Sequence record: OP292654.1
Reading direction: 5' to 3' (one strand)
DNA length: 64,000 bases
The notes beneath the pieces are model-generated. The model had not been told where the DNA came from. It saw only the letters and a list, made by a program, of their open reading frames with translations, and made no database searches. Positions 28,701 through 56,880 of the stretch are shown one piece after another. A program made the translations under genes and the position numbers. Within the stretch, counting starts at the first letter, position 1. Each line of letters opens with the position of its first letter.

Positions 28701-31700
28701 CCATCAGCATTATACTGCTCATAACCGCTATACAATTGGTTGTTTAGTGCGACAGTACTGTTTTGACGAGCGATAGCTTGCCAGATAACTACTTGTCTTG
28801 ACAAAGTTTTAACATACAATGTCCACACACCATCTGCATCAATAATACGAATTACGTCACCTTCTTGATAGTTCTTCGTGTTCGCTACATCAATGCTTGT
28901 TTCATCAGTGTATGTAGTGTTCTCGTCGTAACCAATTGCGTACCAGTCAGCAAGTGACCAATACTGAGTCATATCAAGAGAAGTTCCGAGGGATTCAATA
29001 TAGTCAGCTTGCTTGATCATTTTATGCTGACCTTCTCCACGGTTTTCAAGAGTAATGTAAACTGCTGAGCCTCCAGTACTTGGAGAGTTCATTAAACGAA
29101 TGTAATTATTTTCATCAAAATGTACAAAGTACACAGTTGTTGAATCTAACGGAGATGGTAGAGTACCATTTGAACTCACTAGTACCGCATCGTTTTCGAC
29201 GAAAGCAGCAGTTGTTGGATTAATTACAAGTTCGTTGTTATAGTTTAGTACTTTAAAACTAATAAGATTTGGATTTTCTTCTACAGTTTTTACGTTAAAC
29301 ACATCAGCCATTGTTACAGCATCAGTTGTTACGTTAATTGTTTTGTAAATTGCGTTAGCCGAATCTACGAAGGTTCTACGTGCTTCAATCACATCTCTGA
29401 ACCAGGTTTCACCAGGCAAAATACCGTTATCGTTAGTTGGGTAATTCAAATCAAGAACAGTACCGTTAGGTAGAGTTTCTTGAGATAGTAGAGAATTCCA
29501 CATAGAATCCCAAATAACAGGGTTGAAATTATAATCCATTCCTTCTTTACATAATTGATACTGTTCATGTTTAACAACTTCAGTAGCATCATTTTGATAT
29601 GTAATACTTAGAATACTTTTATCATCGGTGATTTCTTGTTGAAGTCCACTGATGATGAATGAATTTTTACTAATTGGTGCGAACCAAGGAGCATTTAACA
29701 AAGATGGATTTTGAATTGTTCTAGCCAATTCATTACATGGTTTATTACGGTTCTTAACTTTTGGAACGTATATTGCGTTTTTAACCCAAAAATAGTAAAC
29801 TGTCTTATACGCATTAGTACTTTCATCGTATTCTTGGAATACAGAGAAGAAGTCTTCAATTGCTTCACCACTTGGAATCCAAGCTGTATTATCCTTGTTT
29901 AACTTAGCCTGACGTTCACAGTACTTATCCCATTCATATGGAGGATATGGTGATGCTACCCATTCTAGAACGTTAATTTCAGAATTTGGTAGTAGTTTAC
30001 CCCAATTATAGCGTTTATAGCTATTTGTTGCTTCTTCATCAACATTACCGTTTTCATCATAGATTGGACGGGTATAATCCATAAAGAACGCATTGGTTGT
30101 GTTCCACCATACTAGACCAACTTTTTCAGAACCCCATGCTTGAACTGTTTCATCTTCGCTGTTATACTTAGCAGGGTCAACTGGACTTACATATGTAATG
30201 TCAGCCATGATACTACCAGGAATAACACCATTGATTGGATCATAAACGTTCATATACAATTCAGTAACGTTAGTTTCATCATTGTACGTAGTTGGGCGAA
30301 CAAACAAAGTACTTTCAGGTGCTTCATATGAATATTTCTCAGCAATATATGCATCTTTAGCTTCAGCAGTGCTGAAACGGTTAACATAGCGATATAGTAC
30401 TGGATTATTGTCTGCGAAGTTAATAGTATTAGTAACATTCAATGGAATTACAAAACTAGTAGGATCAGATCCAGTTGTAAAATACTGAGTTTCAGCTTTT
30501 AACAAATCTGGCATATATTCAGATTCATCAACAAAGAAGAAGTAATCGCCATCTTCCATACCATGAGCCGCACTTAGTTGTAAAGTACAGTGGTTTCCAG
30601 TAAAACTATCTTCACCAATTGGTGTGATAGAAGAAAGAGTGATTCCAGTATTTTCTAGTTCATAAATGTTCCAGTTGTTATCCATATCACGGAATACCCA
30701 TACCGAAGTAGGTGTTGTATTCGTCTTAGTGATAAAGGATAGACGGTCAGCATAAGCTGTAGTAAAATCACGAGTAGTATAAGATACTTCATCTAGTGTT
30801 ACTGGACCAATATCAGGTAAATGAATACGTTCACTCTTACCTGTACGGGTAGGGAACGCAAATGTACTATTAGGACGAGTAATCCAGCGTGAATCCACAC
30901 CTTGTGTACCATAATACACAATATTGTTCTCAGTACTATCAGTAGTTGCTAGAGGATCAAATGTAAACATTTGAGGTTCTTGTGCGAACTCATTATTGAT
31001 TAGTTGGAACTGTAAGTGTTTCTTACCGTAGATATTACCATATTCACCAATTTTAAATGCCCATTCCTGTAATGCTTTGTAATTATCAGTGTTATATGAT
31101 TTGGATACGCGAAGTACACGTTCGAACACTTGATTAGTACCTTTATCACGGATAAAGCCTTTATAAAAATCAATTTGTGATGTATCACTTGTAATCATCT
31201 GAGAAATATAATCACGAGTTTGGAACCCAATTAAGTGACGAGCAAGATTACGTAAAGTAACATTGTCTACTGGATGATCAGTATCGTAATAACTTCTGAA
31301 GTCATCAACCAATTTTTCGAAATCTGGCATAGTACCAGCTTCAAGGATAATAAATCCAGGTGCTTCTAGACGACCATTCCATGAACCTGTAACATAACCA
31401 TACATCTTAAGCATTTCATGGATTACACCATACTTAGGCATGTAAATGTTATTTCCAAAGATTGTTTTGTCATCGAAAATTACAGCATGTTCATATGAAA
31501 CAACACTAACGCGAATTAACGCCATACGCTTATCAATATCATCTTCAACGCGAACGCTGAATACGTTACCAATACGAGATGTATCAATTTCAAATGGACG
31601 AATACCAGTGTTTGTATCATCAAGAAGTGACCATACACCACCATTAAATTGTGTTACGGATTGAACTGAGCCGAAAGCTGTACCGAATTTAGCATTCTTA

Positions 31701-47408: not shown

Positions 47409-48426
47409 TAAGTCTATAGTGTTTACTGATATTCATTTGGGTCTAAAGAATAACAGTAGAGAACATAATATTGATTGTGTTAACTTTGTAAAGTTCATGA
47501 TCGATGAAGCTAAAGAAAGAGATATTAAAACCTGTATCTTTATGGGAGATTTCTTCCATAATCGTAGTAATATTAACATCAATACACTAGATTATGGTCT
47601 TCAAATCATGCATCTTCTTAACGAGAACTTCGATATGACGTATTTTCTTGTTGGGAACCATGATATGTACCATAAAAATAAGCGTGATGTAACAAGTATC
47701 AATATGGCATCTGTTTTTGAACATATTCACTTCATTAACCAGATTGAAACAATTGATGATTGTGCTTTTATCCCGTTTATGATTGATGATGAATATAAAC
47801 AACTTCCTTCATTACGTGCTAAGTACGTTTTCGGTCACTTAGAACTGCCAGGATACCTTCTTAACAAGATGGTTGAAATGCCAGATCATGGAAAAGAGAC
47901 TGAAGATTCATTTAATGGATGTGAATATGTCTTTAGTGGACACTTCCATAAAAGACAAGCTAAAGTTACATCAAAAGGTACTAAAATTCTGTACACTGGT
48001 AACTGTTTCCCACATAACTTCTCAGATACATGGGATGATGCACGTGGAATAATGTTCCTAGAACATGGTGGTGAACCAGAATTCAAAATGTGGCCTGGTG
48101 CTCCACGTTACAGAACCTTTACTTTGTCAGAACTTCTATCTGAACCAACATATTACTTGGAAGACAACGTAATAGCTAAGGTTCAGGTTGATATTCCTGT
48201 TACAATGGATGAAATTAGTTTTATTCGCGAAACATTCTGTAAGATGTATAAAATTCGTGAGTTTAACATCATACCTGGGAAGAAAACAGTTGAGAACAAC
48301 TTCGGTTCAGAAGATTTCGCATCTAATACTGAATCCGTTGATGAAATTGTTATAGCTCAGATAAAAGAAAACAAATCCAACGTAATTGACAATGAATTAC
48401 TGATTCAACTTTATCTTTCACTATAA
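47395..48426 (+). CDS. gp47: Recombination nuclease subunit, gp47/Mre11/SbcD-like
   Basis: Metallophosphoesterase motifs DIH, GDFFH, GNHD, GHLE, SGHFH. Confidence 0.93.
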   Translation: MALFDKSIVFTDIHLGLKNNSREHNIDCVNFVKFMIDEAKERDIKTCIFMGDFFHNRSNININTLDYGLQIMHLLNENFDMTYFLVGNHDMYHKNKRDVTSINMASVFEHIHFINQIETIDDCAFIPFMIDDEYKQLPSLRAKYVFGHLELPGYLLNKMVEMPDHGKETEDSFNGCEYVFSGHFHKRQAKVTSKGTKILYTGNCFPHNFSDTWDDARGIMFLEHGGEPEFKMWPGAPRYRTFTLSELLSEPTYYLEDNVIAKVQVDIPVTMDEISFIRETFCKMYKIREFNIIPGKKTVENNFGSEDFASNTESVDEIVIAQIKENKSNVIDNELLIQLYLSL

Positions 48427-48438
48427 TTGGAGGCAGGG

Positions 48439-50580
48439 ATGCTTAATATTAAACGCATTACGATGCGTAACTTCTTTTCTTTTGGTAATGCTCCACAAGT
48501 TCTGGAGCTTGACAGTACTGACCTTGCGTTAGTACTTGGTCAAAACAACGATGCATCTGTTGGAGATGACAATGCGGGTCGTAGAAATGGTGTAGGTAAG
48601 TCTGCTATCATTCAAGGTATCGTTTTTGGATTATATGGTAAAAGTATTGGTAACGATATTAAAATACCTAACTTGGTAAACAAGATTAATGCCAAAAACT
48701 GCGAAGTCATTATTGATTTCGAAAAGAACGGTGTTGAATATCGTGTTGAACGTGGGCGTAGCCCCACGTATTTTACTTTCCTTACTCTTAGTGAGGATAA
48801 TGAAGTAATTGATGAATCAAGGGGTGAGAAGAAAGATACACAAGAAGACTTGAATGAGATTCTAGGTATTTCCCAACTTCTATTCGAACATATTGTGGTG
48901 ATGAATGCTAACGTAGAGCCATTTCTCTCTCTATCTCAGCAAAAACAACGTGAAATGATTGAAGAACTCCTTTGTATTACACAATTGACCGAGAAAGCTA
49001 ACCTTCTAAAAGATATGTATCGTGAAACGAAGAATCAAGCAGATCAAGAGAAGTTCAAAATTGAAACTATTACTGCTTCTAATAAGCGTATTCTTCAAAG
49101 TATCGAATCTTTACAACTTCGTGCAAACGAATTTGAACAAAAGAAGGCAAAAACTATCGAATCATTAGTTCAACAACTATCAGATTATGAAGGTATTGAC
49201 TTCACAGCATTATTTGATCTAGCATCAAAGATGGAAGATGCCATTAAACATAACAATGCTCGTACTGTACTGGAAAATCGCTTAGCTCAGGTAGCAGTGA
49301 AACATGAAGAATACTCAGAATCACTAATACAGAAAAAGGAAGCAGTACTAAAGAGTATTGACGAACTTTCTAAGTTCGATATTGCGGCTGAATTAAAATT
49401 ACATGAGGATTTGGAAACCTGGAACACTCTTGACCAGATGTTAAAGGAATTGAAGAACACTAAACGCTTTAAAACACAAGAACTAAATGCTGCTACCTCG
49501 AAAGTTATGCTGATTGGTAATAACATAGAGAAAGCTCAAAAACATTTAGCTTCGTTGGTTGACAACAAGTGTCCAATGTGTGAAAATACTATCCAAGGAA
49601 ATCATAATCATGATAATTTGAAGAAAACAGCAGAGGAAACTCTAGCAGAACTCAATACTAGCTATGAAGCTGCTTGGCATGATATGAATGTACTTACAGT
49701 AGAAGTAGAAAGCATTGAATTGTTCGATATGCCAGAGAAACCAAAGACATATTACCCATCATTGTCTGAAGCTAAGCTACATGAACATAAATTGGAAGAA
49801 TTGAAGAAGAAAAGTACTGAAGAAGAAGTTAATATCTATGATGAAGAATTGATGACACTCTTTGGAGAGTTAGAAAGTACTGAAATCAAGGAATATACTG
49901 AAACATTCAGTACAGATGAAGTGAAAGACCTTCAACGTTCTTTCGACAATCTTATTGCTTCACTGGAACGCGAACAATCATCACAGAATCCATTCTTTGA
50001 ACAAATCGAGACGTTACAAACGAACTCACTTCAACCAGTGGACTATGATGAATATAACAAGCTAGTCAAACTTGCTGATCATCAGGATTATTTGGCAAAA
50101 CTTCTAATGAATAAAGATTCATTCGTTCGTCGCCGTATTATTGAACAAAATATTTCATTCTTGAACAACAGACTTCAGTACTGGATCGAAAAATCAGGTT
50201 CATTACATACAGTGGAGTTCCTAAATGACCTAAGTGTTGATATTGATTTGAATGGTCAATCATATGACTTCAAACAGTTATCACGCGGTGAGCGTACTCG
50301 TGTTATTATTGCGTTGAACCTTGCGTTCCGTGATACATATGAGTCTTTATTCCAGGGTATCAATCTATTGTTGGTGGATGAACTACTAGACAACGGTTTA
50401 GATACTGGTGGTATTGAAAGTTCATGGCATATGCTTCAAGATTTGAGTGCTGTACGTGGTAAGAACATCTTTGTGGTATCTCACCGTGAAGAATTGATTG
50501 GACGTGCTAACTCAATTCTGCGAGTTGTGAAAGAAGATAGTTTCAGTACTATCGAATTTTGCGATGTATTAGACCTATAA
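48439..50580 (+). CDS. gp46: Recombination ATPase, gp46/Rad50/SbcC-like
   Basis: Walker A NGVGKS, CPMC zinc hook, coiled coils, LSRGE signature, LLVDE Walker B. ATG 48439. Confidence 0.95.
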   Translation: MLNIKRITMRNFFSFGNAPQVLELDSTDLALVLGQNNDASVGDDNAGRRNGVGKSAIIQGIVFGLYGKSIGNDIKIPNLVNKINAKNCEVIIDFEKNGVEYRVERGRSPTYFTFLTLSEDNEVIDESRGEKKDTQEDLNEILGISQLLFEHIVVMNANVEPFLSLSQQKQREMIEELLCITQLTEKANLLKDMYRETKNQADQEKFKIETITASNKRILQSIESLQLRANEFEQKKAKTIESLVQQLSDYEGIDFTALFDLASKMEDAIKHNNARTVLENRLAQVAVKHEEYSESLIQKKEAVLKSIDELSKFDIAAELKLHEDLETWNTLDQMLKELKNTKRFKTQELNAATSKVMLIGNNIEKAQKHLASLVDNKCPMCENTIQGNHNHDNLKKTAEETLAELNTSYEAAWHDMNVLTVEVESIELFDMPEKPKTYYPSLSEAKLHEHKLEELKKKSTEEEVNIYDEELMTLFGELESTEIKEYTETFSTDEVKDLQRSFDNLIASLEREQSSQNPFFEQIETLQTNSLQPVDYDEYNKLVKLADHQDYLAKLLMNKDSFVRRRIIEQNISFLNNRLQYWIEKSGSLHTVEFLNDLSVDIDLNGQSYDFKQLSRGERTRVIIALNLAFRDTYESLFQGINLLLVDELLDNGLDTGGIESSWHMLQDLSAVRGKNIFVVSHREELIGRANSILRVVKEDSFSTIEFCDVLDL

Positions 50581-50582
50581 AC

Positions 50583-50608
50583 AAAAAGGAGCCATCAGGC
50601 TCCTTTTT
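50583..50608. terminator. Bidirectional terminator
   Basis: aaaaaggagcc-atca-ggctccttttt. Confidence 0.85.
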
Positions 50609-51077
50609 TTATTTGTGTCATATCTAATTGACCACTTTTAATTAATTTACGAGCTTGATTTGCTCGTTTAGAAGTATTAGACTCTGGAACAACACCAAAT
50701 GATTCAAGTACTGAACATTGTTGTGCCGCTGGTAATGCTTTGAACTTTTTAACATCAATAGTAAGTGCTGTATGATGTATAGCAGTTTCTGAATAATCTT
50801 GTTCATAATAATCTGCTAGATTTCTTAATATTGTTGGTAGATTTTTATCAGTTAAATGCTTAATATATCTATCGAACGCATTTTGTACTTTACCTTCAAA
50901 TGAGTTAACTGTTCTATCAAGAACAGCACGACACTCTTGTTCTCCCTTGTGATTATGGTCAAGTACTGGATCAGTTATTTTCTCTTTAGTAATTGGATCT
51001 AATCCTTTTTGTTTTTTAAGTAGTTCCTGCCTGTATTTGGCAGCTTCCACAGAATTTTTTAACCTTTCCCTTTTCAT
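50595..51077 (-). CDS. gp49: Holliday junction resolvase, T4 endonuclease VII (gp49)-like
   Basis: QKG...LDHNH...RAVL...NSFEG...LRNLADY...IH colinear with recalled T4 EndoVII. Catalytic D-H and N kept. Confidence 0.85.
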   Translation of the reverse strand: MKRERLKNSVEAAKYRQELLKKQKGLDPITKEKITDPVLDHNHKGEQECRAVLDRTVNSFEGKVQNAFDRYIKHLTDKNLPTILRNLADYYEQDYSETAIHHTALTIDVKKFKALPAAQQCSVLESFGVVPESNTSKRANQARKLIKSGQLDMTQIKKGA

Positions 51078-51121
51078 TATAATTCCTCAAAAAGTTCTTC
51101 TACAGTATTTACAAATATCGT

Positions 51122-51149
51122 GGAACGACTTAAAAAAATCTGGTATAAT
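51122..51149 (+). promoter_or_regulatory. Phage non-late promoter GGAACG-N16-TATAAT with no downstream gene
   Basis: ggaacg 51122-51127, ctggtataat ending 51149. Confidence 0.8.
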
Positions 51150-51154
51150 GATAG

Positions 51155-51847
51155 GACAACCCTGCTTGGCTATGCGAAAGTATAGACAAATAAACAGTCG
51201 CTGATGAAAATGTAATTGGCACAATGAGAAGTTCAAGCAGTTCGAAGTGCAGAAGAAACCCGTTAGGAGATGGCATAGTTTGTACCACCCACGGCAATAC
51301 GGCACTATAAAGATGTTCACTAAGCTGATAGAACATCCTCGATAGATATATAGGAACCGACCCTACGAATAAGCTAAGGGAATTTTTCTGAAGAAGAATT
51401 TTACGGTCAATTTTTATACAATATTGATCCGTCCAAAATTCCAGAAGAATAGGTACTGAATTTGATTGCATGGATTTAGTACTGAGTGAGGTAAGCCCTC
51501 GACCGTTGTATAAGACCGTAATAGTGAGAAACAGAACAACCCGCTTACGTTCTATTGAAAAATAGAAATTTACGATGCAATTAAACGACGACTATCATCG
51601 TCAGAATTGAGTACTTTGATTAGTACTTTTTTTATATCCTTCCCCCAGCGGGGGATGATAAACTCCCCAAATCTCGTCAGTATAAATCGTGTTAAACGTA
51701 TCAATAGAACTGAATTGAGTTGATCAGTACGCAGCGAAGCAAGTACAGAACAACGAAAATTCTTTGACATACGAAGTATGGCAAATCTCAAATAGTACAA
51801 TAATTTCAGACACAAAAAAACCAGCACTAAGGCTGGTTAATTTTTTT
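51155..51847 (+). ncRNA. Candidate large structured non-coding RNA (about 480 or 690 nt)
   Basis: Promoter, no credible ORF, at least 10 hairpins including two GAAA tetraloops and G-U pairs favouring the + strand. Terminator-like ends at 51610-51633 and 51819-51847. Confidence 0.6.
51814..51847. terminator. Terminator, strong for minus-strand genes and plausible for the plus-strand RNA
   Basis: aaaaaaaccagc-actaag-gctggttaattttttt. Confidence 0.75.
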
Positions 51848-52043
51848 AGGATTTATTTTCTTTTTTGACCTTTTTATTGTATTGCTTCACCAGTAGGTCA
51901 CGATCTGTCACAGGCATATTCAAGAGCATTTCATAGCTTGTATTGGTGATATACACCGCTACCTCCATTAAACCATTCTTGATTTCTTCACAGTTCAAAC
52001 GAAGGTCAGCTATTTCCTGCATAGTTTCTTGAGCATCAGCCAT
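51846..52043 (-). CDS. Small baseplate hub assembly / tail chaperone protein (gp51-like)
   Basis: SYEMLLNMPVTDRDLL motif, TAATG-coupled to the gp26-like gene. Confidence 0.6.
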   Translation of the reverse strand: MADAQETMQEIADLRLNCEEIKNGLMEVAVYITNTSYEMLLNMPVTDRDLLVKQYNKKVKKENKS

Positions 52044-52897
52044 TAGAAGCCTTGTACGAAAAAACTGCTAGGGTCAAATTGTAGATTCTCTAGTGTCCAT
52101 TCATGACCACATTCTGAACATCCAACATCCATCTCATGACTAACACCAACATTGTTAATAAAGTTAGCTTTGTCACGAATTTGACGAAGTACAAATGCTG
52201 GTTGTTGACCAAGCCATTCTGCGATAAATTTCTGATCAGAAACTTTATCCCCATCTGCTGTTTCAATATAGTCGATATTAGCGACTGTCATATCAAAACT
52301 CAATTGAGTCATAATTTCAAAAATATCACTGAAGTGTTTCATCTTTTCTTCATCAGTTAAATCTGCCTGTTCAAGACTACGAGCTTTCTTTTGTTCGATA
52401 AACATTTTCTGACTAAATTCAGAGTGTTCAGCCCAAGTATGAGGCTTAAATTTCAATAGTAAACCACCCACTTCTTCAAGTAGTAGTTCTGGTTGTTCAT
52501 CTAGTAATTCAGCACTTGCTAATAGTGCTTCTAAGTTTCGCTCAAACGCACCATGATGACTACAGTTAGGACATTCAACTTCGATATTATATGTCGTTTC
52601 TTTTGTTGCGATTTTGATACCAATAAGTAGTAATTCTACATCTGGTACAAAAAGTTTACGAGCATCAGCAACATTAGGAACACAGTTTTCAATAACACTT
52701 GCTACTGCTTCACCATTAATCAATGCGTCTGGATTATTGAACATAAGTTCATCACGTGCTGAACGAGCACAAATACCACATTCAACAGTTTCATTATTCA
52801 ACACACCTTTTGGGTATGGAATAACATTATTACTCACAAGTTTAGTATAAAGTACTTCTACTTTAGTGTACTTGGATAAAGGGTTCATCTTATTCAT
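52043..52897 (-). CDS. Baseplate hub subunit, T4 gp26-like
   Basis: ARDELMFNNPDALING...VIENCVP...DVELLLIGIKIAT, two CxxC motifs. ATG 52897 after GGAG. Confidence 0.8.
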   Translation of the reverse strand: MNKMNPLSKYTKVEVLYTKLVSNNVIPYPKGVLNNETVECGICARSARDELMFNNPDALINGEAVASVIENCVPNVADARKLFVPDVELLLIGIKIATKETTYNIEVECPNCSHHGAFERNLEALLASAELLDEQPELLLEEVGGLLLKFKPHTWAEHSEFSQKMFIEQKKARSLEQADLTDEEKMKHFSDIFEIMTQLSFDMTVANIDYIETADGDKVSDQKFIAEWLGQQPAFVLRQIRDKANFINNVGVSHEMDVGCSECGHEWTLENLQFDPSSFFVQGF

Positions 52898-52909
52898 ATT
52901 GACTCCATA

Positions 52910-52949
52910 ATAAATACGACTATACATGAATTTGTATACAATATTTATA
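52910..52949. promoter_or_regulatory. Face-to-face late promoters
   Basis: ATAAATA on plus at 52910-52916 and TATAAATA on minus at 52942-52949. Confidence 0.65.
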
Positions 52950-52960
52950 AGGAAAATCAC

Positions 52961-55126
52961 ATGGCGGGAATTGGCAACAACGACTATATTCAACAACAAT
53001 TGTTGGATCAAAGCGTAGCTATGAATGATAATTTAAGTGCGATGCGTACAGTACTACTTGATATTAAGAAGAACACTAATAAGGGTTCTGGCTCAGGTGG
53101 TTCTGGTGGTGGCAACAATGATTCAGGAAACGGCGGTGGTCCAAGTGGTGGCGGCTCTGGTGGATCAGGTGGTGCGTTTAAGAATGCATTTAAAGATTTA
53201 TTCGGCGAAGCACAAAACATTGGTAGAACCATGTTGGGTAACAGTGGTTCTATCCAGAATACTGTAGGCTCATTTACTTCTGGAGCTAAAGTACTTCAAA
53301 ATTCATTAGGTAAACTACCAGGACCAATTGGGATGGCAGCTACCGCATTCTTACAAATAGTTCAAGTTGGTGGAATGGTTTATGAATACATGAATGAACA
53401 ATTAAACATGTATAATGAACTAAACTCTGCTGGTCTTACTCTATCTGATGGTATGCTAACAGTACGTAAAGGTGCTGCTGGTGCTTTCATGAGCATTAAT
53501 GATTTTAGTGGTGCGATTAAGCGTAACAGTCAAGAATTGGCTGCTATGGAAGGTCAATATGGGGATGGTGTAGAACACTTTGGTAAATTAATAAATACCG
53601 TCCAACTTGCTCAAGATAAAATGGGTCTTTATGGTGTATCTCAGCAACAATTAGCTGATATTACAGCAAAGAACTATAAATTTGAAAAGATGTATGCTGG
53701 TGAACAAAGTTTACGTAGCATGTCTGAATCACAAAGTACTGAAAAATTTGTCGGTACTATGACATATCTAAGTAAGACTGTAGGTAAGAGTGTTGATGAA
53801 CTATTGAAATCATTTGATAGTATGTCAGATACTGTAGATTCTGAAGTAACAGAACAAGCATTAAAACAACGATTCGGCTTTAGTGATGATAAAGCTGCTC
53901 AGGTAAACAAAACATTTAACTCTGTATATGCGAGTATGGGAAAATCTGGTGAGACACTACAGAAATTAATGTCCAGCAAAAATTTCCAAAACATGTTACC
54001 TGATGAATACAATAACAACTTTACTCAATTGTACACTAATCAGTTACAGCAATTACAAGCTGCTGGTGTCACTGATGAAAAACAAGCACGTAGAGCAATG
54101 TCACAATGGGTTAAAGAACACCAAGACATGTTAGACATGGAAATTGGTAATCAGACCTTAATGAACAATACTGCTGCGGCAGCTTGGTTGAAACAATTAA
54201 AGACTCAAGAAGCATTATTGAATGATCCTAAAAATAACCCAACACCACTATTTGAAAATATGACACAACGTTTCAATAACTGGATTGGGAAGACATTTAC
54301 TGAACCATTTAATACGTTTTATGCTAAAACTGCGGAAGATGCATCAAAATATCTAACCGATTTAGCTGATAACAGTACTGATGCTTGGGATTTTATGTCC
54401 AAACTAGCTACTGATGCTTTTACTAAATTTAATTCTGGTATGTTAGGGCCATTTGGAGCTTTAACTGAAATACCAGGTAAGATTATGTCAATGATTTTCG
54501 GTGATTCATGGAAAGGTGTTTCAGATGCGTTCCTTAATTTAGGTGGAGACTTAGTTCAAGTTCCTATTCGTATTGGTAAGTTGATTTGGGAAATGTTCAC
54601 TGGTTCAGAAGGTGATATTGATCAAGCTGGTAAAGAAATGATGGGTTCCATCAAGAAAATTTTCTCTGATGTTATTGGTGTTTTCACTAATATTGGTAAT
54701 TTGAGTATTAATTTTGATGATGTTAAGACTAAATTTTTAGATGCGTTTAATTCATTGAAGAATAAGTTATCCAGTATGTGGGATAGAGTAAAAGGTTGGT
54801 GGAATGATTCGGAAGAACCAGAAGAAGCTAAGCCTGAACCTCCAAAACCTGCTCCAGCAGCACCACCAACAGCATCACAACCAACAAACGTAGGTAATCA
54901 AACCGTAACAGCAAAAACTGAGATAACTAAACCTGTCAAGGTCGAACAAGCCGACCAATCTTCACCAATTACCGAGCAACAAACTGCTTCCAATGGTCAA
55001 GAAGACATGAATAAGGTATTAAATGAGATACTAAATAGTATACAATCACAAAATTCGAATGCTAATCAAACTGCTCTTATTTTGCGTCAGATTGCTGAAA
55101 ATACTGAACCACCTCGAAATGTATAA
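52961..55126 (+). CDS. Putative tape measure / hub protein (T4 gp29-like)
   Basis: Long helical A/G/L/M-rich ORF divergent from the gp26-like gene, with W/F periodic repeats in the C-terminal half. Confidence 0.6.
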   Translation: MAGIGNNDYIQQQLLDQSVAMNDNLSAMRTVLLDIKKNTNKGSGSGGSGGGNNDSGNGGGPSGGGSGGSGGAFKNAFKDLFGEAQNIGRTMLGNSGSIQNTVGSFTSGAKVLQNSLGKLPGPIGMAATAFLQIVQVGGMVYEYMNEQLNMYNELNSAGLTLSDGMLTVRKGAAGAFMSINDFSGAIKRNSQELAAMEGQYGDGVEHFGKLINTVQLAQDKMGLYGVSQQQLADITAKNYKFEKMYAGEQSLRSMSESQSTEKFVGTMTYLSKTVGKSVDELLKSFDSMSDTVDSEVTEQALKQRFGFSDDKAAQVNKTFNSVYASMGKSGETLQKLMSSKNFQNMLPDEYNNNFTQLYTNQLQQLQAAGVTDEKQARRAMSQWVKEHQDMLDMEIGNQTLMNNTAAAAWLKQLKTQEALLNDPKNNPTPLFENMTQRFNNWIGKTFTEPFNTFYAKTAEDASKYLTDLADNSTDAWDFMSKLATDAFTKFNSGMLGPFGALTEIPGKIMSMIFGDSWKGVSDAFLNLGGDLVQVPIRIGKLIWEMFTGSEGDIDQAGKEMMGSIKKIFSDVIGVFTNIGNLSINFDDVKTKFLDAFNSLKNKLSSMWDRVKGWWNDSEEPEEAKPEPPKPAPAAPPTASQPTNVGNQTVTAKTEITKPVKVEQADQSSPITEQQTASNGQEDMNKVLNEILNSIQSQNSNANQTALILRQIAENTEPPRNV

Positions 55127-55143
55127 ATGGAGTTATATAAAAT

Positions 55144-56880
55144 ATGAGTTGGCAACGACATATGACACTAGGACGTTCGAAATTATCGACCGTTCCTCAA
55201 CAAAATGCTATGGCTCAGCCTGGTGGTTCTAAGACGAATTTTTCATCTTACCTACCCGCTGTATATACTGGCCTATCAAACCGTGTTGACCGATATCGTC
55301 AATACGATCAAATGGATCAAGACCCTGAAATTAGAACCGCTTTAAACATTATTGCGGATTTCTGTACTCAAAGTACTAAAGATTTCGGTTTACCATTCCA
55401 AATTCAGTATAAAGATACGATGGGCGATACTGAAGTTACAACTTTAGAAGATCGCCTTGAATCATGGTCTGATTTAAACGAATTTAAAATGAGAATCTAC
55501 GATATTATTCGTGGAATTCTAAAATACGGCGATCAGTTCTTTATTCGTGATCCAGAAACCTTTGTTTGGTATTGGGTTAACCCAATGAACGTTGATAAAG
55601 TACTGGTAAACAACGCAACTGGTAAAACACCAATTGTTTACTTTATGCGTGATGTTCATTTGAACTTACATGATAAGGTAATGAGTAATTTACAAATCGG
55701 CTTTGATAAACAAGCTTATCCAGGAACATTACCTAACTCTTTAGCTAGTTCAGGAAATCAATATGGTTCTCTAGGTAGTGCTGGTGGTTCTGGTTCTGAT
55801 AGTTCAGGACAATTCGGTACTGGTGGACAATTAGATGTTCTTCCAGTAGCGGCAGAACACGTAATTCACTTATCATTAAATACCGGACAAGATCCTTTCT
55901 GGCCTTTTGGTACTAGTATTCTTGAAAATATTTTCAAAGTATACAAACAAAAAGAACTTCTAGAAGATAGTATTATTATCTATCGTGTTCAACGTGCTCC
56001 TGAGCGTCGCGTCTTTAAAATTGACGTTGGTGATATGCAACCGCATCAGGCAATGGCATTTGTTGAACGTGTTAAAAATGATATTCATCAGCGTCGTATT
56101 CCATCAAATAAAGGTGGCAGTACATCACTAATGGATGCTGCTTATAACCCACTAAGTATTCTTGAAGACTATTTCTTCCCTCAAACAGCGGAAGGTCGTG
56201 GTTCTTCAGTAGAAACATTGCCAGGTGGTGATAATCTAGGACAAATTGATGATTTACGTTACTTCAACAATAAATTGATTCGTGGTCTACAGATTCCTGC
56301 TTCATATCTACCTATGGGTCCAGATGATGGAGGTGTTGCTTTGTTTGGTGATGGTGCTACACAAGCAATGGCTAGTGAATTGCGTTTTAACAATGAATGT
56401 ATGCGTTATCAACGTATAGTTTCTAGAACTTTCGATTCTGAATTCAAACGTTATATGCTAAAAAATGGATATAACATTAGTGCATCTTCCTTTGAAGTTA
56501 CATTTAATCCACCAATGAACTTTGCGGCGAATCGTAAAGCTGAAATGGATGCTAAATTGATTCAAACATATATGCCTTTGAATGATCTCAAGTACTTCTC
56601 TAAACAGTTCATTATGAAGAAAATGGGCTTTGAGCAGGATGAAATTGTTGAAAATGAACAACTATGGCTACAGGAAAATCCTGAAGCAGCTAATGCTGGC
56701 GGCCCAGAAGCCCCAGGTTCTGATGCTGGATTACAGTCTGTTGGTATTGAATCCCCTAATAATCCTGAACAGGATTTAGGTATTGATGATGAAGGTAACT
56801 TAGATAGTGCTGATTCTGAATACCAAGATTCACAAGGTGATGGTGGATTTGACCCAAATAGTTTAGGTAATTCATTTTAA
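55144..56880 (+). CDS. gp20: Portal protein, T4 gp20-like
   Basis: LLEDSIIIYRVQRAPERRVFKIDVG, LEDYFFPQ..EGRGSSVETLPGG.NLG.IDD. Confidence 0.96.
   Translation: MSWQRHMTLGRSKLSTVPQQNAMAQPGGSKTNFSSYLPAVYTGLSNRVDRYRQYDQMDQDPEIRTALNIIADFCTQSTKDFGLPFQIQYKDTMGDTEVTTLEDRLESWSDLNEFKMRIYDIIRGILKYGDQFFIRDPETFVWYWVNPMNVDKVLVNNATGKTPIVYFMRDVHLNLHDKVMSNLQIGFDKQAYPGTLPNSLASSGNQYGSLGSAGGSGSDSSGQFGTGGQLDVLPVAAEHVIHLSLNTGQDPFWPFGTSILENIFKVYKQKELLEDSIIIYRVQRAPERRVFKIDVGDMQPHQAMAFVERVKNDIHQRRIPSNKGGSTSLMDAAYNPLSILEDYFFPQTAEGRGSSVETLPGGDNLGQIDDLRYFNNKLIRGLQIPASYLPMGPDDGGVALFGDGATQAMASELRFNNECMRYQRIVSRTFDSEFKRYMLKNGYNISASSFEVTFNPPMNFAANRKAEMDAKLIQTYMPLNDLKYFSKQFIMKKMGFEQDEIVENEQLWLQENPEAANAGGPEAPGSDAGLQSVGIESPNNPEQDLGIDDEGNLDSADSEYQDSQGDGGFDPNSLGNSF

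Follow-up and report, generated by a model that had tools for sequence, protein, structure and literature searches.

A predicted large, structured non-coding RNA that is multicopy in jumbo phages and shared with chromosomal islands

The locus and its transcription signals

The DNA analysed here (the window) is a stretch of 64,000 nucleotides from Xanthomonas phage XbC2 (OP292654.1). It contains a gap of approximately 770 bp with no conserved ORF, at 51078–51845 of the window (175078–175845 of the record), which is unannotated in the deposited record. On one side is a minus-strand EndoVII-like gene (50595–51077; Pfam Endonuclease_7), and on the other are a minus-strand ORF of 65 amino acids (51846–52043) and the baseplate hub, together occupying 51846–53011; these neighbors lie outside the RNA described below. 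A sequence-only reading of the window had singled out this gap as the only intergenic stretch longer than 150 bp, and indeed the largest annotated gap within 1–48000 is 146 bp, and no other gap within 47500–55500 exceeds 150 bp. The gap is 95.5% identical to the corresponding region of phage Kaldavass, compared to 91.6% when the flanks are included in a 2-kb comparison. It is therefore conserved beyond its coding flanks, which we count in favor of its identity as a structured RNA.

The same reading placed a promoter of the form GGAACG-N16-TATAAT at the start of the region. We find it on the plus strand at 51121–51149 as TGGAACG-N13-TGgTATAAT, where TGGAACG is at 51121–51127 and the extended −10 element TGgTATAAT is at 51141–51149 (TG at 51141–42); TGGAACG and the hexamer TATAAT (51144–51149) are separated by 16 nt. 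Transcription is predicted to start near 51156. The promoter is conserved in every homolog, comprising all orthologs, paralogs, and island copies. XbC2 carries 36 plus-strand sites of this class (TGRAACG...TGnTATAAT), which is also found upstream of its DNA polymerase, SSB, primase, and gyrase genes. In the paper on phage CBB the class is described as a divergent RpoD-like promoter with TGAAACG (PMC5259590).

A terminator scan called a bidirectional intrinsic terminator at 51819–51847 on both strands (stem 51819–38, with a T-run on both strands), and it is conserved in the orthologs of this copy (c3 of the five described below). It is predicted to end both a form of the RNA of about 690 nt and the minus-strand 65-residue gene. 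A weaker terminator-like hairpin on the plus strand, P15 (51610–51633), has two G-C pairs followed by U7, and was not called by the scan, for which the threshold was three G-C pairs; an internal stop or pause there might yield a shorter form, of about 478 nt. Its stem, previously read at 51610–27, holds up well where it is present, being 99% paired with five compensatory pairs; it is missing in 20 of 39 sequences, including paralog groups c1 and c5. The conserved core, as delimited by nhmmer and BLAST homologs and by covariation, is at 51156–51686 on the plus strand. The predicted length of the RNA is thus about 530 nt for the core and about 690 nt to the final terminator, or approximately 530–690 nt overall.

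Covariation, predicted fold, and comparison to known RNA families

Covariation within orthologous regions had been proposed as a check on the sequence-only reading, and compensatory pairs were found across 39 homologs. The test covered 115 pairs, using as controls 500 shuffles and a set in which the partners were slid. The proportion of paired cells is 89.5%, compared to 72.1 ± 0.4% in the shuffles and 38–44% with slid partners, and none of the 500 shuffles matched any of the observed measures. Changes on both sides are seen in 76 of the 115 pairs; there are 686 compensatory cells, against 200 in the shuffles, and the covariation score is 0.421, against 0.157 for the shuffles and at most 0.107 for the slid controls. 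G:U wobbles outnumber A:C overall (520 vs. 191) and to a greater degree in the best helices (274 vs. 21), which fits the plus strand as the RNA. Single-sequence fold z-scores are weak (−3.2 for the plus strand and −5.1 for the minus strand) and were rejected as a guide to the strand because they do not discriminate; the strand is given instead by the wobble asymmetry. The gap contains minus-strand ORFs of 113, 85, and 77 residues; every XbC2 ORF in the gap meets a stop by codon 12–49 in Kaldavass and other orthologs. The pattern of substitution argues that the gap is a gene for a structured plus-strand ncRNA.

From these comparisons the plus-strand RNA is predicted to form 17 or more nested helices, which are joined by five pseudoknot or tertiary pairings. 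Approximately 110 columns are invariant across the 39 aligned sequences, and these lie in loops and junctions. At the 5′ end is a pseudoknot domain (51162–51243), which consists of P1 (51162–69/51233–40), the P2 hairpin (51170–75/51180–85), P3 (51201–05/51215–19), which carries a conserved 9-nt loop GAAAAUGUA, and helix X (51228–30/51241–43), which closes the loop holding the 3′ strand of P1. All of these helices belong to the covariation set. Within helix X, the pair 51229:51242 is 100% paired (UA 20, AU 12, CG 7), and compensation at a second pair is seen in one island copy. P4 (51246–50/51302–06) is 100% paired with three compensatory pairs; it encloses P5 (51260–62/51292–94 and 51266–67/51289–90) and a variable hairpin (51268–88) that occurs as two alternative types of module. 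The tertiary pairing T1, of 51297–99 with 51347–49, is also 100% paired, and its pair 51299:51347 is GC in 44 cases, AU in 13, and unpaired in none.

The P6 hairpin (51312–17/51332–37) has compensatory changes at all six pairs, and its loop (51323–25) pairs with 51373–75 to form K1, which is 82% paired with three compensatory pairs. It is followed by the P7 hairpin (51351–54/51362–65; covariation set) and the variable arm P8 (51382–51450), which contains the conserved module UACAAUAU.GAUCCGUC; in some paralogs this module is missing or is relocated into P13. The P9 hairpin (51453–64/51471–82; covariation set) presents a loop (51465–70) that pairs with 51576–81 to form the pseudoknot K2, where five of six pairs are compensatory, and which is kept in island copies with the new sequences UUUAUG/CAUAAA and UUCAUG/CAUGAA. 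Beyond it are P10 (51487–91/51497–501; covariation set), the pseudoknot K3 (51505–09/51536–40), P11 (51517–21/51570–74), P12 (51524–28/51544–48), and P13 (51549–56/51561–68; covariation set), where K3, P11, and P12 are all 100% paired.

The P14 hairpin (51587–51602), with a conserved loop CUAUCA and 3′ strand CGUCAG, is present in all copies. U51595 within it covaries in parallel with U51672 (UU 41, CC 16). The P16 region (51641–51681) comprises the P16 hairpin (51641–46/51650–55), an invariant G-run and AUGA, and the conserved tail CAAAUCUCGUCAG (51669–81); it is invariant or nearly so in all five paralog groups, and recognizable, with substitutions, in the island copies. The 3′ domain (51687–51805) is more variable and contains hairpins at 51725–30/51743–48 and 51768–72/51776–80 that carry loops of CGAAG type, and compensatory changes are visible in the alignments.

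Most of the stems that had been read directly from the XbC2 sequence fit this fold. Those at 51170–85, 51312–37, 51488–500, and 51550–67 each show compensatory changes among the 39 homologs, as do 10 of the 12 pairs of the stem at 51453–82, and the stem at 51768–80 covaries. Others stand in part: the stem at 51641–55 is 90% paired with one-sided changes only; that at 51587–602 is present, with a register that shifts between homologs; and the long arm at 51386–446 is a variable arm, of which the covarying part is its base at 51382–85/51447–50, where four of four pairs are compensatory. The proposed pseudoknot between CCCGCT and AGCGGG overlaps by one base with the better supported K3, and both of its sides are nearly invariant, so that covariation neither supports nor refutes it. 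Orthologs do not preserve the repetition of acagaacaac, which is therefore probably due to chance.

The RNA was compared to known families using Rfam 15, whose scope includes GOLLD, ROOL, RNase P, tmRNA, group I and II introns, OLE, HEARO, and 6S. At gathering thresholds there were no matches in the whole window, and at E ≤ 10 the window gave only weak sRNA-type matches far below threshold, of which the best fell on the hairpin of the terminator. No family recurred among 16 homologs at E ≤ 0.5, and nothing was found in the Serratia copy at E ≤ 1. ARAGORN found neither a tRNA nor a tmRNA in the window, and our literature searches found no described RNA of this kind in these phages. Two resemblances were considered and rejected. 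The segment ACAGAGCAACCCGCUUU resembles a conserved region of RNase P; there is no match to an RNase P model, and the segment forms the loop of P12 and pairs locally with 51505–09 rather than as a long-range P4. A likeness to the hammerhead (GAUGAG/CGAAA) has the elements in the wrong order and no Rfam match.

Among the closest analogies are GOLLD and ROOL, large “ornate” ncRNAs from phages, prophages, and bacteria, of unknown function, which assemble into homo-oligomers. Like them, the RNA described here is several hundred nucleotides long with many pseudoknots, strongly conserved junctions, a link to phages, and no ORF. It differs from both in that the Rfam searches of the window and the 16 homologs match neither, and in being hosted by Enterobacterales jumbo phages; we know of no description of five evenly spaced paralogs per genome, or of capture by integrative islands, for GOLLD or ROOL. 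The sequence-only reading had proposed a novel, promoter-driven, ORF-less ncRNA on the plus strand, about 480 or 690 nt long and outside all known families, and this is upheld by the covariation, the strand asymmetry of the wobble pairs, the broken ORFs, and the negative Rfam searches of the window copy and its homologs. We conclude that the RNA almost certainly represents a new family of large ncRNA.

Copies in phage genomes and in chromosomal islands

A search using nhmmer recovered five diverged paralogs in XbC2, at 28.7, 94.6, 175.1, 259.2, and 338.9 kb of the record (c1–c5); a paralog search within the 64-kb window found no second copy, the other four lying outside it. All five are on the plus strand in unannotated gaps and are 58–84 kb apart, a spacing more even than expected by chance (analytic P ~0.002, calculated post hoc after seeing the data, and with genera that are not independent because of synteny). 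In c1, c2, c4, and c5 the genes downstream are on the plus strand with no terminator between, and in c1 and c2 terminator-like hairpins occur just after the −10 element. The first reading of the gap included neither the multicopy nature of the element nor its five pseudoknot or tertiary pairings, nor the copies in islands that are described below.

The positions of the copies are conserved in Mimasvirus and Eneladusvirus, and those of c1, c3, and c4 in Serratia phage BF and Yersinia phage fHe-Yen9-04. Further copies occur in Asteriusvirus and Munch-like phages. Orthologous placement in different genera shows that the element does not move actively. The motif was found at 48 IMG/VR loci, and 52 metagenome loci were confirmed as members of the family. 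In the relative RaK2, the gap at the syntenic site is only 364 bp and has no match, implying that such phages can dispense with this copy. Mobile genes are inserted beside the element in some phages. Independent annotations leave the gap empty; the records of Kaldavass and Hallingskeid have small ORFs annotated in the corresponding region, and one GenBank record labels a copy as “repeat_region.”

The RNA also occurs, its fold intact and the phage promoter in place, in small integrase-bearing defense islands in Serratia, E. coli, and an Enterobacteriaceae MAG, and a tree indicates that it was captured by islands at least twice. In the Serratia island, which is the one that was compared with phage genomes, the RNA is the only DNA common to both. 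The islands encode a large serine recombinase or a tyrosine integrase, and their GC content is 30%–35%, compared to 51%–58% in the host flanks; the 10.7-kb E. coli island is bounded by a 24-bp direct repeat of the 3′ end of ffs. The chromosomal copies thus show the integrase, flanking direct repeats, and foreign base composition expected of a phage satellite or mobilizable island. No recognizable replication or packaging domains were found in those island proteins that were scanned. Cargo genes often lie downstream of the island RNA in the same orientation, and in one island the next gene is on the minus strand. The window and Serratia copies have AT-rich 3′ tails, which the E. coli island copy lacks.

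Jumbo-phage satellites have a precedent, first demonstrated in 2025, in the Pseudomonas islands I23, I44, and I55, which are transduced by jumbo phage JPTI55 (PMC12595487). Mobilized by a jumbo phage, as the Serratia and E. coli islands may also be, they resemble the islands described here in being small, with an integrase and defense cargo and without transfer genes of their own. The phage-type promoter on the island RNA hints indirectly at induction, replication, and transfer of the present islands by a helper phage. The Pseudomonas islands differ in their hosts, phage lineage, and backbone, which has intY and alpA and lies at the tmRNA gene. A term search of the text describing the Pseudomonas islands found no mention of a non-coding element (PMC12595487).

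Possible modes of action

That small mobile islands have copied the RNA suggests a self-contained module, and an intact copy would benefit an island most simply by acting on its own carrier DNA. Our leading suggestion, which we hold tentatively, is that the unit is an origin-type RNA that acts in cis, on its own DNA molecule, and is exploited by satellite-like islands. The RNA would be transcribed from the promoter class shared with the phage replication genes; the nascent RNA would fold and be recognized by phage factors, and would then prime or mark the start of DNA synthesis, in the manner of ColE1 RNA II and the T4 oriF and oriG transcripts. Five such starts could serve the 368-kb genome, and islands consisting of an integrase, the RNA unit, and cargo would be amplified, and perhaps packaged, on phage infection. 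A T4-style R-loop origin had been offered previously as the main alternative to an ncRNA, and is backed indirectly by the five roughly even copies, the replication-gene promoter class, and the capture by islands in which no replication genes were found. The ncRNA and origin readings are compatible, since an RNA might work in cis at an origin. We note that XbC2 is annotated in the phage record as encoding RNase HI and RNase H.

The likeness to ColE1 RNA II and the T4 origins extends to a non-coding transcript, some 500 nt long and driven by a promoter, and to a U-run followed by a G-run, which in the XbC2 RNA is near the 3′ part of the core. With T4 it further includes a middle-mode promoter common to replication genes, and several sites per genome. 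Kreuzer and Alberts reportedly found that plasmids with T4 oriF or oriG were replicated and packaged after T4 infection, which is a parallel to islands bearing this unit alone. The tertiary structure of the XbC2 RNA is, however, far more elaborate and conserved: ColE1 RNA II consists of simple stem-loops, and we know of no such pseudoknot or tertiary structure in the T4 oriF and oriG RNAs. There is also no sequence similarity, and no antisense regulator was found, the one candidate signal being a weak minus-strand promoter-like site at 51410–51382 (9 of 12 matches). The resemblance is one of possible mode of working, not of membership.

Several observations run against the origin model. The approximately 110 invariant positions and five tertiary pairings look more like a ribozyme or an RNP RNA; the promoter class, with 36 members, is not specific to the ncRNA; and the AT-rich stretch 3′ of the core is not universal. 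The cumulative GC skew of XbC2 has no inflection at the copies, and is uninformative as an origin test because skew here follows the direction of transcription.

The same degree of conservation, in loops and junctions as well as in the tertiary pairings, would suit an RNA that instead acted in trans, as a ribozyme, an RNP RNA, or a self-assembling “ornate” RNA like GOLLD or ROOL, with the paralogs providing dosage or subunits. We regard this as the main rival, possible if somewhat less likely than an origin-type role. In its favor, the gene in the window stands alone, between a promoter and a terminator of its own, and the loop-to-strand pairings are paralog-specific in sequence and could be intermolecular; the likeness to GOLLD and ROOL points the same way. 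There is a parallel in PA5oct, a distantly related jumbo phage, in which RNA-seq defined four plus-strand ORF-less transcripts (ncRNA001–004) that are dispersed and 236–619 nt long, two of them abundant at 1%–5% of phage reads (PMC7318152). The invariant motifs of the XbC2 family are absent from ncRNA002 and ncRNA004, and nhmmer with these two gave no significant similarity (best E 0.088). A function in trans leaves unexplained why islands have at least twice taken an intact copy together with the phage promoter, where a decoy would be expected to differ, and also the even spacing and long upkeep of five diverged copies at fixed positions; nor is there a linked gene for a partner protein.

It is improbable that the RNA is a cis-acting transcriptional leader, a folded 5′ RNA that modifies RNA polymerase (processive antitermination, as for HK022 put or EAR) or otherwise licenses downstream genes in the course of infection. 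The RNA is always beside its promoter and in the same direction as most genes, plus-strand genes follow without a terminator in four of the five XbC2 copies, and island cargo is often co-oriented downstream; the hairpins within the RNA (P15) or after the −10 element (c1 and c2) would need read-through. Downstream of the window copy, however, come a strong bidirectional terminator and genes on the minus strand, and in one island too the next gene is on the minus strand. The known antitermination RNAs are only 70–120 nt long, and with 36 promoters of the same class spread over the genome very long transcripts are needless.

Dispersal at even intervals, the neighboring insertions of mobile genes, and the “repeat_region” label might suggest a repeat that functions as DNA (a protein-binding array, a packaging or recombination site, or a mobile remnant) with incidental hairpins. 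This is very improbable, given that compensatory changes preserve pairing, that wobble pairs are strand-specific (G:U far exceeding A:C), that the pseudoknots with a conserved promoter and terminator imply a transcribed and folded plus strand, and that the copies occupy orthologous sites in different genera. A coding gene or pseudogene missed by annotation, to which the minus-strand ORFs and the small ORFs annotated in Kaldavass and Hallingskeid might point, has a negligible probability, since the XbC2 ORFs are interrupted in orthologs, independent annotations leave the gap empty, and substitutions track base pairs and not codons.

Few large RNAs with intricate folds are known, and almost all of them have fundamental roles (the ribosome, RNase P, introns, and tmRNA). 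The element described here is unannotated in nearly every genome record that we inspected, though whole genera of Enterobacterales phages of about 350 kb retain it, with five copies per genome. As the sole element common to these phages and the island compared with them, it provides a handle on how replication starts in T4-related jumbo phages, and equally on the movement of islands that lack transfer genes. Some relatives can be grown on E. coli K-12, for example the Asteriusvirus phages Sharanji and 121Q, which have members of the family, and this makes genetics, knock-down, plasmid-origin tests, and cryo-EM feasible. Should the RNA prove to be a trans-acting ribozyme or RNP, it would be a new member of a very short list. 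If it is instead a cis-acting origin-type RNA, a further and more doubtful step is that it forms a portable “replicate-me” or “mobilize-me” tag, marking five start sites in the phage and stolen at least twice by minimal islands that have no replication or packaging genes. On infection, a Rak2-related jumbo phage would then amplify and spread the islands, and the tag would represent a new class of origin, one set by an elaborately folded RNA, as well as a novel and minimal means by which satellites hijack a phage.

Locus, promoter and predicted ends of the RNA

Xanthomonas phage XbC2 (OP292654.1, 367,901 bp) belongs to the genus Mimasvirus; window positions are record positions (rec) minus 124,000. 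The gap at 51078–51845 is flanked on the minus strand by an EndoVII-like gene (50595–51077, Pfam Endonuclease_7) and by a 65-aa ORF together with the baseplate hub gene (51846–53011). It carries no annotation in the deposited record, and the matching gap is also empty in the independent annotations of CBB, GAP32, BF and fHe-Yen9-03. The sequence-only reading, which reproduces the window sequence here correctly, had called it the only long intergenic stretch; this holds over window 1–55500, the part checked, and the gap is exceptional there because the largest annotated gap in window 1–48000 is 146 bp. We note that the start codon of the hub gene is uncertain, a mechanical ORF call giving 52043–53011 with a TTG start (322 aa) against an annotated 285 aa (rec 176043–176897).

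The gap was also described as lacking ORFs and as matching no known family, and both statements are borne out. The minus-strand ORFs of 113, 85 and 77 aa are spurious: in-frame stops interrupt them at codons 12, 41 and 49 in Erwinia phage Kaldavass, which is 95.5% identical to XbC2 in the gap against 91.6% over a 2-kb stretch including the coding flanks, and they are disrupted in all other orthologs as well. Rfam gave no family match for the whole window at gathering thresholds, for the gap region at E ≤ 10, for 16 homologs at E ≤ 0.5 or for one chromosomal copy, and a tRNA and tmRNA scan found none. Full-text literature searches found no description of this RNA. RNA-seq has defined four ORF-less RNAs in the distant relative PA5oct (PMC7318152), and the two compared with it show no significant similarity.

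As first proposed, a plus-strand promoter can be read from the sequence, with TGGAACG (51121–27) and TATAAT (51144–49) separated by 16 nt and a TG at 51141–42. XbC2 has 36 sites of this class (TGRAACG-N13-14-TGnTATAAT), all on the plus strand. Four of the five copies of the RNA have one upstream, as do many tRNAs and the genes for DNA polymerase, SSB, primase and gyrase. The class matches the 'divergent RpoD-like' promoters of CBB, which have TGAAACG at −35 and occur at 18 sites, many ahead of DNA-synthesis genes (PMC5259590). Six sites lie in the window, all on the plus strand, at 2240, 5188, 23330, 46472, 51121 and 61330.

With this promoter, the RNA is predicted to start near 51156, some 7 nt past the −10. 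Both suggested lengths, about 480 and 690 nt, are reasonable: hairpin P15 with its U7 run (51610–33) would stop the RNA at about 478 nt, and a bidirectional intrinsic terminator, found by terminator scan at 51819–47 on both strands, at about 690 nt. P15 has just two G-C pairs, is not called by the terminator scan, and is missing in paralog groups c1 and c5. Because the best-conserved 3′ block is downstream of P15, the functional RNA must read through the hairpin to at least 51686.

Copies in jumbo phages and chromosomal islands

The gap is kept at the EndoVII-to-hub site in Kaldavass, CBB, GAP32, BF, the Erwinia pEa_SNUABM phages, fHe-Yen9-03, fHe-Yen9-04, Munch, 7t3, fENko-Kae01 and Hallingskeid; the syntenic site in RaK2 (Alcyoneusvirus) is only 364 bp long, with no match to the family. 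BLAST with the gap found three to five places per relative genome, and the remaining XbC2 genome was therefore scanned with a family HMM. This identified five paralogs (c1–c5), all on the plus strand and every one in an unannotated gap, at rec 28736–29301, 94591–95267, 175071–175845 (c3, the window copy), 259157–259867 and 338933–339534; the other four lie outside the window. Successive distances are 66, 80, 84, 80 and 58 kb, the last wrapping round, and for five random points the probability of no gap being smaller than the smallest observed one is about 0.002 (analytic and post hoc, with genera made non-independent by synteny). BF and Yersinia phage fHe-Yen9-04 share the XbC2 positions of these paralogs for c1 (roughly 30 or 25 kb), c3 (174 kb) and c4 (259–260 kb). 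A motif scan of IMG/VR gave 48 loci; CBB and two uncultivated genomes each have five. In metagenomes, scanning confirmed 52 members, every one on a low-GC, phage-like contig. The tree contains five paralog clades that are older than the genus split.

Several copies have individual features. An extra G+C-rich hairpin with a U-run lies directly after the −10, at the extreme 5′ end of the RNA, in c1 (rec 28761–28800), c2 (rec 94640–94680) and the 121Q copy (extract L011, about 1410–1450); in c1 and c2 it may stabilise the 5′ end, act as an attenuator or serve as terminator to the upstream gene. The copy in Escherichia phage UE-S1 (ON568341.1, 311388–311763) is annotated by its depositors as 'repeat_region', the sole annotation among the records examined to recognise its repeat nature. 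Salmonella phage Munch (extract L008, 555–1511) and Klebsiella phage fENko-Kae01 (L009) have a 318-aa ORF inserted between EndoVII and the RNA; it is homing-endonuclease-like, with DUF723 and treble-clef zinc-finger domains, and its end abuts the −10 of the RNA. In fHe-Yen9-04 (L007, 1924–2730) the c3 RNA has, at its 3′ end, an inserted adenine methyltransferase gene in place of the final terminator; the sister phage fHe-Yen9-03 does not have this insertion. Between gp46 and EndoVII, Pectobacterium phage CBB (L003, 1607–2341) has a 'structural protein' gene that is missing from XbC2, another sign that the flanks of the locus accept insertions.

The search of prokaryotes, with each species represented by one genome, used a motif scan followed by nhmmer. 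Full-length copies occur in Serratia sp. 2723, a second Serratia assembly and an Enterobacteriaceae MAG, and, by BLAST, in 2 of 5,426 complete E. coli genomes. They lie on small, AT-rich, integrase-bearing islands (30–35% GC vs. 51–58% in the host flanks). The Serratia island, of which the RNA segment alone matches jumbo phages, has the order dapE-arsC, a 568-aa large serine recombinase, about 380 nt, the RNA, variable defence cargo and a 206-aa resolvase. One strain carries Hachiman and AbiGi as cargo; the other carries two reverse-transcriptase proteins, of which one has an AEP domain. The latter cargo (extract L084, 13124–20461), a 1780-aa AEP-TOTE and reverse-transcriptase protein and a 525-aa reverse transcriptase about 430 nt 3′ of the island RNA, is probably a defence system with its own RNA. 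The E. coli island (10.7 kb) is located at ffs, with a 24-bp direct repeat at both ends, and contains an IS3-split tyrosine integrase, the RNA, an mSLOG/DUF4326-DUF488-DuOB set and a resolvase. In strain LR-29-1 a third 24-bp ffs-derived repeat, inverted and inside the island, about 450 bp upstream of the RNA (L086, 11498–11525), suggests two tandem elements or an inversion. The MAG island starts beside thiM, and its RNA is followed by a CI-like repressor gene. Serratia sp. L9 has a truncated copy beside rimO (L080, 3513–4445), where a resolvase-domain ORF cut at 200 aa runs into the 3′ two-thirds of the RNA, among T6SS Hcp, DUF4225 and IS3 transposase genes; this locus is a decayed island.

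The island RNAs keep a phage-type promoter (TGAAACG-N-TGnTATACT or TGGGATG-N-TGtGATATAAT). On the tree, the copy from E. coli falls inside the c3 clade, next to Eneladusvirus copies, and the Serratia and MAG copies form a separate long branch, so that the unit was captured two or more times. Among the island proteins scanned, none had a domain for replication or packaging.

Fold and strand

The model was derived by aligning 57 unique copies, scanning for covarying column pairs and reading the alignment; all coordinates refer to the plus strand of the window copy. The 5′ domain comprises P1 (51162–69/51233–40), P2 (51170–75/51180–85) and P3 (51201–05/51215–19), which has the invariant 9-nt loop GAAAAUGUA. 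Helix X (51228–30/51241–43) closes the loop holding the 3′ strand of P1, and is modelled as a loop-to-strand pseudoknot with kissing-loop geometry. Then come P4 (51246–50/51302–06), P5 (51260–62/51292–94 and 51266–67/51289–90), whose cap hairpin is of two alternative types, the tertiary pairing T1 (51297–99/51347–49), P6 (51312–17/51332–37), whose loop pairs with 51373–75 as pseudoknot K1, and P7 (51351–54/51362–65). P8 is a variable arm with a conserved UACAAUAU.GAUCCGUC module, which in other paralogs is missing or lies inside P13. The loop of P9 (51453–64/51471–82), at 51465–70, pairs with 51576–81 to form K2, and P10 is at 51487–91/51497–501. Pseudoknot K3 (51505–09/51536–40) reaches into the loop of P12 (51524–28/51544–48), and P11 is at 51517–21/51570–74. 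P13, P14 and P15 are followed by P16 (51641–46/51650–55), and the tail is invariant (GGGGGAUGA...CAAAUCUCGUCAG). Two unpaired positions, 51595 and 51672, each within a copy of the motif AUC(A)UCGUCAG, covary in parallel (U/U, n = 41; C/C, n = 16), which suggests that one factor or one third strand reads both.

Covariation in related phages, proposed as a check at the outset, supports the 115-pair model, as tested on 39 sequences of less than 93% identity that were aligned independently with MAFFT. Paired cells amount to 89.5%; shuffles give 72.1 ± 0.4%, with none of 500 reaching the observed value, and sliding the partners by 1–3 columns gives 38–44%. The shuffles leave phylogenetic signal in and the slid controls remove it. 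Both sides change in 76 of the 115 pairs (62.8 in shuffles), compensatory cells number 686 (200 in shuffles), and the covariation score is 0.421, compared with 0.157 shuffled and at most 0.107 slid. P4, K3, P11, P12, X and T1 are each 100% paired with compensation, and five of the six K2 pairs are compensatory. The fold is retained in the island copies, which bring fresh compensations in P9 (12/12) and K2 (6/6, with UUUAUG/CAUAAA or UUCAUG/CAUGAA). The weak spots are P2 (alignment of its variable hairpin), P14 (register off by one base between groups) and outer P13. Alignment of the variable arms is imperfect.

Single-sequence folding is weak and does not tell the strand (z = −3.2 plus, −5.1 minus). 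G:U wobbles greatly outnumber A:C, by 520 to 191 over all pairs and by 274 to 21 in P8–P12 and P15, which identifies the plus strand as the one that folds, in agreement with the promoter and the first reading. The gap encodes a new, large plus-strand RNA with pseudoknots, of which these phages have several copies and which also occurs in the islands.

Possible function

We tentatively favour a cis-acting, origin-type module, because of the repeated capture, the even spacing, the fixed positions, a promoter class that replication genes also use, and the RNase HI and RNase H that the XbC2 annotation assigns to the phage. The origins of T4 have transcripts from middle promoters, and plasmids carrying them are replicated and packaged, established behaviour that fits an origin-type reading. 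An intact copy with its phage promoter was taken more than once by islands that have nothing else in common with the phage, for which the simplest benefit is one acting on the carrier DNA. The captured unit would act on the very DNA carrying it, and the islands, judged by genomic context, would be satellite-like hitch-hikers. Satellites of jumbo phages were first shown in 2025 (PMC12595487).

A serious rival, which we rate somewhat less likely, is a trans-acting RNA. Elaborate folds and conserved loops, as seen here, are typical of ribozymes and RNP RNAs, whereas we know of no origin RNA so elaborate or so loop-conserved; this is the chief objection to an origin. A cis-acting antitermination or leader role is improbable: it fits four paralogs but not the window copy, downstream of which come a terminator and genes on the opposite strand. 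A DNA-only repeat is effectively excluded by the wobble asymmetry and compensatory pairing, and a protein-coding gene still more firmly by the stops that break the gap ORFs in orthologs.

The XbC2 RNA belongs to a new RNA family, and its genomic behaviour is new as well; if the origin model is true, it would represent a radical variant of RNA-primed origins.
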